Source: Zygophlyctis sp. KS116
Taxonomy: Eukaryota > Fungi > Chytridiomycota
DNA: 8,087 bases
Assembly (NCBI GenBank): GCA_054661495.1
Contig: BAAFSQ010000388.1
Location: 1 to 8,087, forward strand
Direction: 5' to 3'
Shown piece after piece: positions 1,689-8,010 of this stretch. A model generated the notes under the pieces. The model saw nothing but the letters and a program-made list of their open reading frames with translations, did not search any database and was not told the origin of the DNA. Each line of letters starts with the position of its first letter. Position 1 is the stretch's first letter. The position numbers were made by a program, and so were the translations under genes.

Positions 1689-2525
1689 AGATAGAGGCAA
1701 AGATTCATAGCATTCAAGAATTGACAACATTACGTCCGGAACAATATGAAAATCTGACGTCGTTCAATCTACGTCACCGAAAAATGTACACCGAGGAATT
1801 GATTAAAGATATATATTTGAAAACATTGAAGACAATAGATCAGGAAATATGGTGGATTTGCATACGAGATGAAACGTTAAAGACTTATGCTGAAGTATTG
1901 GTCAAGGCAGCTGAGTCAGATGAATTAAAGCGTTCGTCTGATGAAATCAGTGAGAGGAAAGAAACACGCGGAGAAACTTCTAATTTTGCAAGAGTATCAG
2001 ATGTCAATGAACTAGCGTAGCAGTTTAGATCTCTTGCATTAATGATAAATAAGCAGAAGGCATCACGACCCTTAGATGAAGTTAAATGTTATAATTGCAA
2101 TGAGATGGGTCATTATTCTAGCAATTGTACTGCCCCAGCCAGAGATCGTGAACGACGATCATTCCGAGATAACCAAAGACCAAAAGAACCAGGCGCTTCT
2201 CCGGCTACAGGTGCTAATGCAATACCATTGGGACTAGGTGAAGGATTTCTGGCAATGGAAAAAGAACCGACTACAGCCATGCTTGCAAATGAAGCTTTTA
2301 CGACAAATGAAACCTTTTCTTATAAGAGAATGAGAGTAGATAATTTAGTTAACCAGCGACAAACTTCTACTTCAACAAATACCGAAGGAAAGAAAAATTT
2401 TGGGTTGGATCCTAAGATGAGCAGTCAGTAATACTCTTAAAATAGACGGTAATTCTGTTGTTGAACGGATTTTAAACGAACCAGAACCTATAACAACAAT
2501 AGAGCTTTTGAATGGTGAAATAAAA
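1688..2525 (+). pseudogene. Gypsy gag remnant with zinc knuckle
   Basis: Reads KIEAKIHSIQELTTLRPEQYENLTSFNLR..., with an in-frame TAG at 2018-2020 (ELA*QFRSLAL). CX2CX4HX4C motif CYNCNEMGHYSSNC at 2087-2128. Frame change near 2420. Confidence 0.85.
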
Positions 2526-3238
2526 CCATTCGGTATATTTGGATTTAATGTTATGCCTTTCGGCCTTACAAACGCACCCGCTCATTTCTCACGTATTATG
2601 AACAGAATATTTCACGATTATTTATTCCTTTTTGTATTAATTTATTTGGACGATTTGTGTATCGTCTCTAGTACTTTGGAACACGTAAAGTTGGTTTTTG
2701 ATAGATTACGTATATTTGGTGTACGTCTGAAATTTACGTAACCCTCAATGGTCTGGCTTCCTATTTTCGTCGATTTATTCCTTCTTTTGCTGAAATAACA
2801 TTACCACTTTCTAGTTTACTCAAATTACCGTCAAAGAGTGTTTTCATTTGGGGGGAGGAGCAGCAGCAAGCATTTGAAGCCATCAAGCATATATTTATAT
2901 CAGAACCTCTTCTTAAAATGCCAACAACAGAAGGAAAATTTATTTTATCTACTGATGCCTCTAGTTTTGCTATAGGAGCATGTTTAGAACAAGTACAGGA
3001 CGATACAGTTGTACCGATTTGTTATTTCTCTAGAGTATTGCAAGCAGCTGAAAAGAACTATTCAGCATATGAGAAAGAAGCATTAGCAGTTATATGTGCT
3101 GTCAAACAGCCCAGAAAATATTTGTTACCGAATAATTTTATTATTTACACTGATAATTCTGCAGTAGCCAGTCTTCTCAACGCCAAAGATCCAGTTGGAC
3201 GAATCATAAGATGGACTAATTCATTAATGGAATATAAT
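2526..3238 (+). pseudogene. Gypsy RT (C-terminal half), connection domain and RNase H
   Basis: PFG...VMPFGLTNAP and YLDD (2643-2654). After a deletion at ~2740: GLASYFRRFIPSFA...WGEEQQQAFE, then TDAS, AEKNYSAYEKEALAV, YTDN, GRIIRW. Confidence 0.95.
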
Positions 3239-3240
3239 TA

Positions 3241-4475
3241 ACCCTAGCCGATTTTCTACCTCGCAATCCGGTCTTTTTCACTACTGAAGTTACGGGATCA
3301 TCATCTACATTATCATATGAGGAAATTATAAACAAACTCAAGCAAAATTACGGGGAAAATGCATCCTCAAAGGAGTTACGACAGCTTAAGCGGTTTATTT
3401 TAATTGACAATGTTTTATTTAGACAGACGGCGTCAACCCCAAAGTATGTGTTTAAGGACGAAAATGAAACATTTGATATATTACGACGACTTCATAACGG
3501 AATGGGACATTTTAGCTTTGAAACAATTTATAAATGGGTAAAGGAAAGATACTGGAGTAAAACCCTTTATAATGATGTAAAACGATATTTTTCTTCATGT
3601 TTACAATGCCAAAGATTTCAATTAAAGAAGCCTATATATAAATTCTCGGGACGATCGTCCATTTCAGGGATGTTTCAAGAATTTGCCATAGACTTTTTGG
3701 GACCTTTTCCCACTACCCCTGATGGATTTAAATTTATTTTAGTAGCAGTAGAAAAATTATCTCGTTATCCCATAGCAAAAGTGTATAAGAATCAATTAGC
3801 AATCACTGCAGTCGAATTTGTCAAAACCGAATTATTGCTCATTACGGTTGCCCAACAGTTTTAACAGTTGATAGGGGTTCATGCTTTGTGTCTTCGTTAT
3901 TTAAAAGTATGGCTCAAGAGTACAATATTAAGTTGAATTTTACTCCAGCATATCAGCCCGAATGGAATGGAACAGTCGAACGTCTAAACAATACAATCAG
4001 ATACGCTTTAACAAAAACTATTAAAGGAAAGTTTATAGATTGGAATTATTTCTTGCCTCAAATTCTATTTGGTATAAGAGCAAGAATCAGCAACGCTACA
4101 GGATACTCACCATTTTTCTTGATGTATGGGACACATACAAAACTACCAGGAAAGTATAATTTAATCGACCCTCTTTGTGAAATACTACCTGAACTTCGTA
4201 CCTTAGCATTTGCTAATCTACCTGGTCACCGCTCAACGTTAATTCATGACTCCATTAGCTCTTCAAAAATTAAAACATTTGAAGTGAATGATCTTGTTAT
4301 GTTCCTAGATCCATCCATTCGTAAAACTAAGATAAGAGACAAGAAAACAGCTCGGTATTATGGCTCTTTTAAAGTCCTAGGATGTCATTCTCACAATACT
4401 TATACACTTGAATCAAAGTCAGGTCAACGTTCTCTTATTCATGCGTGTCGTCTTCGTAAATTCATTCCTAGCTAA
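3241..4475 (+). pseudogene. Gypsy integrase (HHCC zinc finger, DDE core, GPY/F-like tail), frameshifted
   Basis: LADFLPR (end of RNase H), LHNGMGH...CLQC, IDFLGPF, frameshift near 3830 into HYGCPTVLTVDRG, PEWNGTVERLN, RYYGSFKV, stop TAA at 4473-4475. Confidence 0.95.
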
Positions 4476-4658: not shown

Positions 4659-5075
4659 TTAATATCCCCGATACTTCTTGGATAACTGTGCTTCAGTAAG
4701 CATCGACCTTATACACTCTTGCAAGGTTCTATTCATCCTTTCTCCAACTCCATTTTGTTGCGGGGTATATAGGATAGAGCTTTGTTGAAGTACTCTATTT
4801 TCTTCCAAGAAATCTCTAAAACTGTTTGAGAAATATTCTCCCCCATTGTCAGATCTAATTATACCAATTAGATCTGACACTATTTATGACAATCATAAAC
4901 AGTTCTGTAAATTTGGTGAAGATTTCTGATTTTTGACGGATTAAATATGCAGCAAAATCCCGAAAAATCATCAATGAAGGTAACAAAACACCTAAATCCA
5001 CCTAGAGCATTGACTTCAAATGGACCACAAGCGTCCGAATGAATTAAGCCAAATTTACGTGGATTTCTTTGACTT
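4659..5075 (-). pseudogene. Ty1/Copia integrase core fragment, frameshifted
   Basis: Minus strand reads GLIHSDACGPF...GGFRCFVTFIDDFS / YLIRQKSEIFTKF / IIRSDNGGEY...YTPQQNGVGERMNRTLQECIRSML, the Copia D-D-E motifs. Confidence 0.93.
4847..4879. repeat. Perfect 14-bp inverted repeat with 5-nt spacer
   Basis: TGTCAGATCTAATT (4847-4860) - atacc - AATTAGATCTGACA (4866-4879). Confidence 0.95.
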
Positions 5076-5084
5076 CTCTCACCA

Positions 5085-5540
5085 AATATTATTGACTCAA
5101 ATGCGCCAAATTCAAACAGAGATTTATAAAATACTACCAGCTTTTAATAATTCAGTGGGTAATACCATTGCTGGAATAATTCAAGAGTTTGAAGAACGAA
5201 CTATTGGGGCTGGTACAGTAACTCGAGATGGTCTGGAGGGACTTTTAAGGTTGACACTAGAGCAAGTTCTTGCTGAAAGAGGAATGTGAGTTTCTAATGA
5301 ACCAGCAGATATTGTTGAAAATTTAAAAATTGAAAGTGCTGTCTATACACATAATGGTCGTTTAATTAAATTGCCAGTTAATTTTAAATTTCCTTTTTGT
5401 ACAGTAGAAGAAGCCTGGCAAAACTGGATGCTTAGAGACACAATGAAGGGAATTCCAAAATTAAGAAGCTGTGAACCAATCGATTTTACGGACAGAAATC
5501 AAAGAAAAAGGTTTAGTGATTTCTCCTACTTAATGCTTAA
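5085..5540 (+). pseudogene. C-terminal region of a second, CryptonS-like tyrosine-recombinase element (GCR1_C-like W-x-x-W domain)
   Basis: ORFs 5020 and 5371 share one frame, split by TGA at 5287-5289: EERTIGAGTVTRDGL...KLPVNFKFP...AWQNW...GIPKLR...RKRFSDFSYLM. From memory this resembles the tails of oomycete Crypton-like proteins. The catalytic domain is absent. Confidence 0.6.
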
Positions 5541-5551
5541 GGTTAGGGTTA
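5541..5551 (+). repeat. Telomere-type (TTAGGG)n micro-tract at an element junction
   Basis: GGTTAGGGTTA lies exactly between two convergent truncated coding fragments. Confidence 0.75.
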
Positions 5552-6272
5552 TTCTGTTGCTCCTTTAGTTTTTGTAATATTTTTAAACTTTCCCCTACCG
5601 TGAAAATTTAAATACATCGTACGATGTTTATTATAATCTGTTATTTGACTAATCATCTTCTTACCTTTCTGAGAGTACAACTTACTGAAGAAAGTTTCAG
5701 CCTCATTCAAAACCTGCAACATTACCCCTTTGTTTAACATCAACTGGCTGGTGAGACCTTCCAAAGTCCCATCTAAAAACAAAAGATCTACAAAGTTTTG
5801 ATTTTCCGATATCATTCTGTTAATTTCGCTTAGGGGTCCAACCATTGTCTTGAGAATTGGGGATTTTTTTGTTCCCTTCTTTCCCACCAATAGTGAGTAA
5901 ATGATCAGCGGCTCCTCCCAGCTAAGGTCAAAATCTGGTTTTACGTAGCAGTTCGATCCTGAAAGAAAAGAAACAATTGGAGTTAAAACGTATAACTGGA
6001 AATTAGACATTATACTGACCTATCATGTTAATTAAATCGGCAGTTCTTTCACCACAACAATCAGTGATCAGAGGAACGACTCCTAGACAGTCGAAAACTC
6101 TACTCCTTAAAAATCAAAAGATTACCGCTGCGTTACAGTCTCGTCCCATTCACGCTTGGACTTTTTCCTGGTAGGGCTGAATAATTATTACAATCAAGAT
6201 TTACGTGTCAAAGACCATAGAAAAACTCCTTTTTATTGAAGGTGAGGAATCACATGCTTCCGATATTAACAT
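5552..6272 (-). pseudogene. DUF3987/YfjI-like P-loop NTPase (putative helicase) gene with micro-introns, 3'-truncated
   Basis: WEEPLIIYSLLVGKKGTKKSP (Walker A-like), DGTLEGL, LQVLNEAETFF (Walker B-like). Model: ATG at 6272, introns 6204-6177 (28 nt), 6125-6100 (26 nt), possibly 6019-5996 (24 nt), and 5664-5638 (27 nt). One frameshift is required near 6020. Confidence 0.72.
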
Positions 6273-6333
6273 GTTTTTTTGAATAATTTAAGATGCTTTT
6301 AGGACGCGTCGTGAATTCTTATTTATTTTGACA

Positions 6334-6922
6334 TCATTTAATAATTTGTCCAATCATATTTAATATAATATTCCGAAAATTGAAAGTGGAAAATTGAAAA
6401 AGAAAATTTGTTAAGAGTTGAACTTGCAACATGAGAAATATTTTCGGTCCATTAGGAAAACATTTTTTTACTGAAGAGAAATTTTCTGTATGCTTTAAGA
6501 GGCTTTCGTTAATATTTGATTCATCTAAAGAGTTTTCTTTGTCCATTCCTTGATTGCATATTTTAAGAGTGTTTTTCCAATAAATGTTTGGGAAAGCACA
6601 TTTTTCATTTATGTTTCCAAGTTTTTTAAGAAAGAATTGATACCATGCTGGAATCTCATCCCATGTCTTACGTTTCATCCATGGAAAATGTAGCACTAAA
6701 TCCTCAAAAGATAGTAATAACTTTGGATTTGAAGGTAGTTTCAGTTTATTAAGATCAAGATTGAGTCTATACATTACTTTGCATCCTTAGCATAAATTTC
6801 ATCTGGCCTTTCAACCAGAATCTGTTTGATCGGCTCAAATGATAAGTGTTTAAAGTTAACATTATTGTCATATATCAAGTTAATAAAGTACTTTATGAAT
6901 GTGTCAATGCAGTTTTTAATTT
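6334..6922 (-). pseudogene. Unassigned ORF remnant, cut at its 5' side by the pogo insertion
   Basis: Two overlapping minus-strand ORFs meet at TAATG (6776-6772), together ~195 codons in very AT-rich DNA. No motif recognised. Confidence 0.3.
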
Positions 6923-6924
6923 TA

Positions 6925-6949
6925 CCGTAATTCCGATGGTCGAACGAAC
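6925..6949 (+). repeat. Left terminal inverted repeat of the pogo element
   Basis: CCGTA terminus after TA, typical of a pogo subgroup. The core TGGTCGAACGAAC is the exact reverse complement of 8067-8079. Confidence 0.8.
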
Positions 6950-6986
6950 ACCTCGGAGCTTTTTTCGAAAATTTATTTGTGAGAGA

Positions 6987-7006
6987 GTTCGGTCGACCAT
7001 CGGAAT
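6987..7006 (-). repeat. Internal inverted copy of the TIR motif
   Basis: GTTCGGTCGACCATCGGAAT is 19/20 identical to the reverse complement of 6930-6949. Confidence 0.9.
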
Positions 7007-7737
7007 GGAATTCACTCCTGTACACAAGAGACAAAGAACTTATAATTTTGATTTAAGCGAAAAAAAGAAGTTACTTATTTTAGCAAATAAAAGTTCTCCT
7101 TCACAGGTTTGTGCTGATTACAATATACCAAAAGGGCCGTTCGCTGGTTGGAAGAAAACAATAGATATCGATGTAGATTATGTTAAAAGACAATATACGT
7201 TGCATCCGGGACCTAAATCTAAGGGGCAACACTTGGAAACAGTTATTGATACGTTTATTGAAAGAAGAGAAGAAGGTCAACAGGAATGTACAGTAAATTC
7301 TATTGTATTTGAAATTATAAGCTTTGATTATGATTTCATGGATGCAGATTATTACAAAATAAGAAAGTGGGGCTACCTTACTAGAAACAATTATTCTATT
7401 CGCAGCAAGACTCATGTTGCTCAAAAAGCTTGTAACGTTGAAATATGTTTGGATTTTGTTATGTATGCCAATGAAATCAAGGAACACTTAAATATTCATC
7501 CTGATTTTGTGATAAATATGGATGAAACACCTTCTTGCTATTATGATAACCGGCCAAATACGAAGGTCGTTTCAAAGGGTGCCAGATCAGTTAATGGTGC
7601 ACAAACAAAAAAAAGGAAATTATCGAGCTACTGTTTGTCTAGCTGTTACTGCTTCAGGGAGAAAGTTGGAGCCTTTAATTATTTATAAAGGACAACCCGG
7701 TAAAACGAATGAGAAAAAAGCAACAGTTGGAATGGTC
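7005..7737 (+). pseudogene. pogo transposase remnant (N-terminal HTH, CENP-B/Tc5-type HTH, start of DDE_1)
   Basis: MEFTPVHKRQRTYNFDLSEKKKLL...WKK; KWGY-LTRNNYSIRSKTHVAQK; VINMDETP (first catalytic D); frameshift in A8 at 7607-7614, then RATVCLAVTASGRKLEPLIIYKG. Truncated before the other catalytic residues. Confidence 0.92.
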
Positions 7738-7739
7738 TA

Positions 7740-7751
7740 GGTTAGGGTTAG
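7740..7751 (+). repeat. Telomere-type (TTAGGG)n micro-tract at an internal deletion junction
   Basis: (ta)GGTTAGGGTTAG joins the truncated transposase to the truncated HIRAN-like gene. Confidence 0.8.
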
Positions 7752-8010
7752 TTTCGTAGGAATTTGTAGATTTACTATATAATTTAATAATTTGAGCCAG
7801 CTTATTTTCATAGCATCTTTTAAATGGAAGAAATTCCTTAGCGACATGTCCAACTAAGTCTGATTCCACTCCATTCTTAATTTCAAAAGCTTTTAAACTG
7901 TATTCATTTTTATCCTGTTCATTCAAAAATACATCGGGCTATAGAATCACAACGCTGTTTTCTTGCATTTCAGAACTATAATTATGAAGTCCAACAATTA
8001 GAAGATTCAT
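7752..8010 (-). pseudogene. HIRAN-like accessory gene inside the pogo element, 3'-truncated
   Basis: From ATG at 8010: MNLLIVGLHNYSSEMQENSVVIL*PDVFLNEQDKNEYSLKAFEIKNGVESDLVGHVAKEFLPFKRCYENKLAQIIKLYS, with the HIRAN-like layout IVG..Y / L.P..N..D / VGHV..E. In-frame TAG at 7941-7939. Confidence 0.55.

Follow-up and report, generated by a model that had tools for sequence, protein, structure and literature searches.

Short TTAGGG tracts at the joints of broken transposons in the chytrid fungus Zygophlyctis sp. KS116

TTAGGG tracts in a window of broken mobile elements

The window analyzed here is an 8,087-nt stretch of the Zygophlyctis sp. KS116 genome and comprises the entire contig C388 of a 12.7 Mb assembly in 1175 contigs. 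It was found to be a heap of broken mobile elements, including a Crypton, a Ty3/gypsy relic, an integrase fragment, a Crypton-type fragment, a DUF3987 gene and a pogo-type element. Four short tracts of the motif TTAGGG, designated J1 to J4, lie at joints in this material. The features are as follows.

130-1700: Crypton gene with an NDC10_II match, interrupted by very short introns
1721-4475, forward strand: broken Ty3/gypsy LTR-retrotransposon relic, which holds J3 and J4
2739-2745, reverse strand: J4 tract, 7 nt, where the Ty3/gypsy reverse transcriptase has lost about 45 codons
3238-3246, reverse strand: J3 tract, where sequence following the Ty3/gypsy RNase H has been deleted (compared with homologue L057 and a contig of run X4)
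5020-5540, forward strand: Crypton-type C-terminal fragment cut at J1, with 38-40% identity to L064-L066 (5020-5350 assigned by position only)
5541-5551, forward strand: J1 tract, 11 nt, GGTTAGGGTTA, joining the Crypton-type fragment (forward) to the truncated DUF3987 gene (reverse)
5552-6272, reverse strand: DUF3987 gene, intron-containing and multicopy in the genome, cut at J1 (PF13148, E 6.7e-07; 5' limit approximate)
6936-7737, forward strand: pogo/Tigger-type DDE_1 transposase cut at J2 (homologues L004 and L005 have DDE_1, E 5e-11; direct match weak)
7738-7751, forward strand: J2 tract, 14 nt, TAGG-TTAGGG-TTAG, with the perfect part GGTTAGGGTTAG at 7740-7751, at an internal deletion of about 470 nt in the pogo/Tigger-type element
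7752-7968, reverse strand: convergent accessory ORF of the same pogo-type element, cut at J2 (homologues L004 and L026)
Also in the window: a short integrase fragment, one of the broken mobile-element pieces

The window sequence was present in metagenomes of fresh water and in a single run labelled by organism. The closest named matches of an Rpf2 gene on contig C57 were chytrids (Rhizophlyctis and Spizellomyces, about 50%), and a metagenomic relative reached 78%, so that this one gene places the host near the Chytridiomycota. All four joints were crossed with zero differences, at depths of 62-350, by contigs (rather than raw reads) of X1 and X3, runs of two studies that are possibly the source of the assembly. 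An earlier sequence-only reading had asked for the junctions to be verified by long reads or PCR; the contigs of these runs span both J1 and J2.

In that reading, J1 and J2 stood out as the window's two longest TTAGGG-phase tracts, and both were recovered as such. In 1000 dinucleotide shuffles of the window, the mean number of tracts of at least 11 nt was 0.013, and two were never encountered together (0/1000). The tracts had also been suspected of being non-templated, and they were indeed absent from related copies that run through both positions.

Each tract had further been held to fuse two truncated coding fragments. For J1 this stands, as homologues on both sides continue past the break. 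The Crypton-type homologues extend approximately 60-75 codons beyond position 5540, and two DUF3987 homologues (L014 and L018; 71-72% DNA identity) stay in frame past 5552 and lack the tract. The truncated DUF3987 ORF stops on a codon provided by the J1 tract. It was noted that the Crypton-type fragment had no Pfam match of its own, and that the ORF of its homologue L065 was closest to NDC10_II/GCR1_C clusters, which we treat as a lead. The DUF3987 gene region (5552-6456) occurs in several diverged copies, and a conserved upstream segment of about 110 nt (6343-6456) was encountered at more than 15 places; the gene and this segment possibly form an undescribed mobile element.

At J2, however, the joint lies within one element. 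L004 carries the transposase and the convergent gene in unchanged order but separated by approximately 467 additional nt, and it lacks the tract; J2 is therefore read as an internal deletion. The break in the transposase is passed by L004 and L005, and that in the convergent gene by L004 and L026. The tract itself is better read as 14 nt from 7738 than as 12 nt from 7740. The DDE_1 domain of the homologues agrees with the transposase that had been proposed to the left of J2, and the 'HIRAN-like' label given to 7752-7968 was dropped, this accessory ORF having no family match in Pfam or PDB. The left breakpoints of J1 and J2 are inexact because the parents are only 38% (protein) and approximately 70% (DNA) alike.

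The convergent accessory ORF was found in several pogo-type copies (L004, L023 and L026), and a search of JGI metagenomes recovered no relatives of the pogo transposase. At its left end (6930-7006), the pogo-type element carries a 20-nt inverted repeat. A 16-nt sequence matching it lies where the contig stops (8067-8082), and the two are probable terminal or subterminal repeats. Compared to window positions 6607-6611, contig C422 contains approximately 1245 nt more with a 5-nt overlap, likely an insertion with target duplication that is absent from the window.

The remaining two tracts lie in the Ty3/gypsy relic. At J3, the parent ends in TA in register with the repeat, and GGGTTA was then added. 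A tract-free form of J3 was found in run X4 of another study, represented by one contig at a depth of 4.8, which has 38 other letters where the window has seven (3238-3244) and may be an allele or close paralogue of the window locus. At J4, the match to the Ty3 reverse transcriptase stops near residue 248 and picks up near residues 293-296. Tracts of 7 nt alone are not above chance in the window (4 seen and 3.4 expected), and a 12-nt loss at position 2674 is a deletion with no tract.

Distribution of the tracts and anatomy of their junctions

We assessed enrichment in 72.6 kb of loci whose sole selection criterion was homology to the window. These contained 20 tracts of at least 9 nt, whereas shuffles averaged 1.0 and the reversed motif gave 1 (approximately 20-fold), and tracts of at least 10 nt numbered 11, compared to 0.13 in shuffles. 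The excess amounts to about one tract per 4 kb of transposon DNA. All tracts of at least 8 nt with a homologue in the collected loci were located at an alignment end (15/15), compared to 32% of random positions and 0/5 for the reversed motif. Neither the reversed motif nor two other permuted motifs were enriched at breakpoints. Some 7-nt tracts were already present in the parents, and one 11-mer falls within the open frame of a host-like gene (C68).

Among 21 two-sided junctions, a crude set in which partner insertions and tandem repeats are counted and some known cases are missed, a tract of at least 7 nt was present in 2 and of at least 6 nt in 4, and tract-free deletions were clearly the most common. 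Joining through a telomere tract is a minority route (2-4/21 junctions).

Three 11-mer probes of the assembly recovered 77 distinct tracts of at least 11 nt on 56 contigs. Of these, 72 were found in contig C129 and smaller contigs, which make up approximately 49% of the assembly (p = 4e-17; reversed control 12/25). Contigs C1-C128, which by interpolated lengths make up roughly half of the assembly, contained 5/77 tracts compared to 13/25 for the reversed control. The whole-genome count of the 11-mer (44, and 25 for the reversed 11-mer) is weak by itself, and the signal rests on the distribution and the junctions. The C64 tract, the sole large-contig tract that was opened fully, lies inside a Copia relic (L067:720-960); there, the 11-nt tract marks the joint of a duplication of about 60 nt, and a second tract of 8 nt follows about 110 nt further.

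Pairs of parent and derived copies at 90-100% identity fix the break 5' of the G strand. The pairs include the following.

C653: 16 nt replaced by AGGGTTA, with flanks 95-100% alike on both sides
C270: parent ends TAG, then GGTTAG added
C131: parent ends G, then GGTTAG added twice
C1129 and C159: parent ends TTA, then GGGTTAGG added
C615: a further clean parent/derived pair at 90-100% identity

The tracts occupy internal sites and are absent from the ancestral (empty) sequence. Their targets carry the changes typical of end joining, namely filler, deletions of 16 to approximately 470 nt and a duplication at C64. Parental bases were in register with the repeat over at least 1 nt in 7/11 pairs and over 3 nt in 3/11 (p about 0.005), in a small set that was judged by eye and whose length threshold favours tracts with in-register parental bases. 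Such bases have been used as an argument for telomerase in mammals (PMC2246262). At the other end, the 3' ends of the G strand fell at TTA, TAG or AGG in 29/36 unselected tracts (p = 0.008), as expected if synthesis halts near a template boundary.

The perfect tracts measure 9-20 nt. Among 83 inner units, 11 were TTAGG and one was TTAGGGG, which suggests a slightly stuttering enzyme, and J2 itself contains a short unit. A telomere of regularly alternating TTAGG and TTAGGG was considered and set aside, since TTAGGTTAGGG occurred only 4 times, below its control (19), and TTAGG is a minor variant. At C137, C826 and C385, G-strand and C-strand tracts stand opposite each other, separated by 2-6 nt, which is how two ends that were each extended ahead of joining would look. 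Head-to-head loci resembling tiny telomere fusions were recorded at L070 (C137:7481-7510), L073 (C826:94-124), L053 (C385:4617) and L003 (C1129:955). Extra non-telomeric filler or local duplication was encountered at the C1162, C64 and C133 joints; at C1162 (L026:279-301), approximately 15 nt of non-telomeric filler lies ahead of a GGTTAGGG tract.

Candidate origins of the tracts

The sequence-only reading had attributed the tracts to telomerase, and the genome was found to possess a TERT gene on C66 (RNA-binding domain, E 3e-22), in which the reverse transcriptase motifs A, C and E with their aspartates were present when viewed exon by exon. Two Ku-domain genes and three ATP-dependent ligases were also identified. 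An array of four TTAGGG units was absent from the whole assembly; missing terminal arrays are common in short-read assemblies. TTAGGG telomeres are documented in the chytrid Batrachochytrium (PMC11797018). Among the telomere-like runs encountered, the longest was a 39-nt mix of TTAGG, TTAGGG and TTAGGGG units on C590 (L071:78-116), which may reflect the actual telomere sequence and its slight irregularity. The search for the telomerase RNA did not recover it. Its single candidate, the sole TTAGGGTTAGG in C1-C130 (C64:32122), turned out to be another scar, placed in the Copia relic at the duplication joint, and had no Rfam support.

Relative to the parental copies, the tracts are new, and they are enriched, lie at breakpoints and are primed in register. 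From these features we infer the enzyme and the joining pathway: telomerase probably adds 1-3 repeats to a trimmed break end as filler, and end joining seals the break. A double-strand break would arise and its ends would be trimmed, as the loss of 16 to about 470 nt suggests. The telomerase template would anneal to the final 0-3 bases of one 3' end, to which the enzyme would add 1-3 TTAGGG units, presumably stuttering to TTAGG at times. The tail would be too short for a telomere, and end joining would tie it to the other end, at times perhaps through a short microhomology. Both ends would sometimes be extended, which would give the head-to-head tracts. The scars may persist mainly in transposon relics because elsewhere they would wreck genes.

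Alternatively, telomeric sequence could be captured or copied with no telomerase at the break, either by a polymerase that switches to telomeric DNA or TERRA or through the ligation of fragments. This origin has been proposed in mammals (PMC7215372), and priming by microhomology would likewise produce in-register starts. The non-telomeric filler and local duplications at C1162, C64 and C133 are also of the kind that it would leave. However, random fragments should end in any phase of the repeat, and the 3' ends observed here are biased. The tracts are nearly all 9-20 nt long, and the reversed and two other permuted motifs lack enrichment at the breakpoints. We regard capture or copying as unlikely to account for the tracts.

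A second class of tracts brings a retroelement into consideration. Seven tracts end in TTAGG and run directly into a common element 3' end: C341 (L046), C380 (L051), C385 (L052), C471 (L060), C590 (L071/L091), C760 (L076/L090) and C137 (L088/L092). The family is a non-LTR retrotransposon that encodes RVT_1, and tandem repeats extend across the other side of some of these tracts. About seven tracts are accordingly assigned to a telomere-associated retrotransposon, and its 3' ends on TTAGGG tracts indirectly support TTAGGG as the telomere repeat. When the flanks were examined for sequence copied from the telomerase RNA beyond its template, the mark of TERC-ITS, this 3' end was the only recurrent one.

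Abortive reverse transcription by this element could also write short tracts, if a break primed on an RNA tail ending in CCCUAA and synthesis stopped within the tail. The encoded RVT_1, the seven tracts that enter the element and AGG as the commonest tract end are in keeping with it. An intermediate class is nevertheless missing. Among 34 tracts ending GGGTTAGG, the seven run into the element for approximately 200 nt or more where the contig permits (C341 stops at the contig end), and the others contained no element sequence except for one weak 8/12 match. Many tracts also stop earlier, at TTA or TAG. The window tracts are flanked by Crypton, DUF3987, pogo and gypsy sequence, and none adjoins the 3' end of the non-LTR element. 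Abortive retrotransposition is accordingly judged quite improbable.

The sequence-only reading went further than the priming of breaks by telomerase and envisaged a repeat-erosion or DNA-elimination pathway. New, enriched, in-register tracts at breakpoints and the presence of TERT lend support to its telomerase part, and the dedicated pathway was not supported. Under such a programmed or transposon-directed process, transposons would be cut on purpose, rejoined with the help of telomerase and eroded. The heavily cut relics, the concentration of 72/77 tracts in the smaller contigs and the placing of the C64 tract in a Copia relic are what it would produce. Selection against lesions in compact gene space predicts the same distribution, however. 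Since the tracts bring stops and deletions, selection alone can confine them to relics, and targeting is not called for. Most deletion junctions are also tract-free, and no common motif was seen at the breaks. The scars appear fixed at full depth in X1 and X3, where only the joined form and no second, intact form was seen among contigs, which drop rare forms. We consider a programmed pathway very improbable. Also doubtful is a related speculation for this chytrid-related lineage, in which telomerase would be a permanent component of the end-joining machinery, recruited to breaks in transposon-rich chromatin (perhaps by Ku), and transposons would be actively cut and sealed with stop-bearing repeats as genome defence.

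Chance matches, parental sequence or assembly chimeras are scarcely credible. The parental 7-nt tracts, the C68 11-mer, the possibility that X1 and X3 share the assembly's source and the use of contigs instead of raw reads might bring them to mind, but they are already largely refuted by the approximately 20-fold enrichment, the 15/15 placement at breakpoints, the collinear flanks on both sides and the presence of the joints in runs of two studies (depth 62-350).

The prevailing view is that telomerase is kept off internal breaks. The tracts suggest that it often takes part in ordinary break repair in this fungus, at a frequency that would surprise a telomere or repair specialist. With about one scar per 4 kb of transposon DNA, hundreds of natural events are expected, which make it possible to deduce how an unknown telomerase is primed in register, where its template ends and how processive it is. 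Whether short interstitial repeats are the work of telomerase, an old question, becomes statistically testable.

Comparison with known systems

In the programmed DNA elimination of ciliates and nematodes, telomerase acts on new internal breaks and the ends become telomeres in a somatic genome. The fungal ends are instead rejoined, and neither a second genome form nor a break motif was seen.

Among fungi, the closest likeness to the seven-tract class is MoTeR in Magnaporthe oryzae, where the 3' ends of non-LTR elements adjoin short TTAGGG tracts, tandem repeats lie on the far side, and the tracts are split target sites of the telomere (PMC7367193). De novo telomere addition on seeds of 1-4 nt has also been shown in M. 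oryzae (PMC7367193). The window differs from MoTeR in that its four tracts lack such an element and J2-J4 retain both flanks in order. A literature search, for which many subscription papers were outside its reach, recovered no report of telomere-repeat break filler in fungi.

Telomeric insertions and neotelomeres in human cells are similar in that telomerase adds repeats at internal breaks, and the insertion requires telomerase activity (PMC5388398; bioRxiv 10.1101/2022.10.31.514589). These human cases arise in somatic cells, are infrequent and increase upon mutation or overexpression, whereas the fungal scars are fixed in a wild genome with both flanks kept.

Mammalian short interstitial telomeric sequences (s-ITS), described in primates, rodents and the horse, share with the fungal tracts the one-step insertion of TTAGGG at breaks, the deletions or duplications of the target and the 1-3 parental in-register bases, and telomerase has been proposed as their writer (PMC2246262, PMC7215372). 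Surveys of s-ITS count at least four units, a cut-off that their authors call arbitrary and that leaves shorter ones uncounted; the fungal tracts contain 1-3 units, and at 9-20 nt the perfect ones all fall below it. Density also differs, with approximately one tract per 4 kb of transposon DNA in the fungus compared to 229 loci in the human genome according to the s-ITS papers. A screen of approximately 350,000 induced mammalian junctions recovered zero telomere-repeat insertions (PMC7215372). Unlike mammalian s-ITS, the fungal tracts mostly replace deleted DNA and include head-to-head pairs and TTAGG variants; their one recurrent flank was the retroelement 3' end, and no telomerase-RNA flank has been seen so far. 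The kind of event is already known from mammals, and it is the host, the shortness and the density that differ here.
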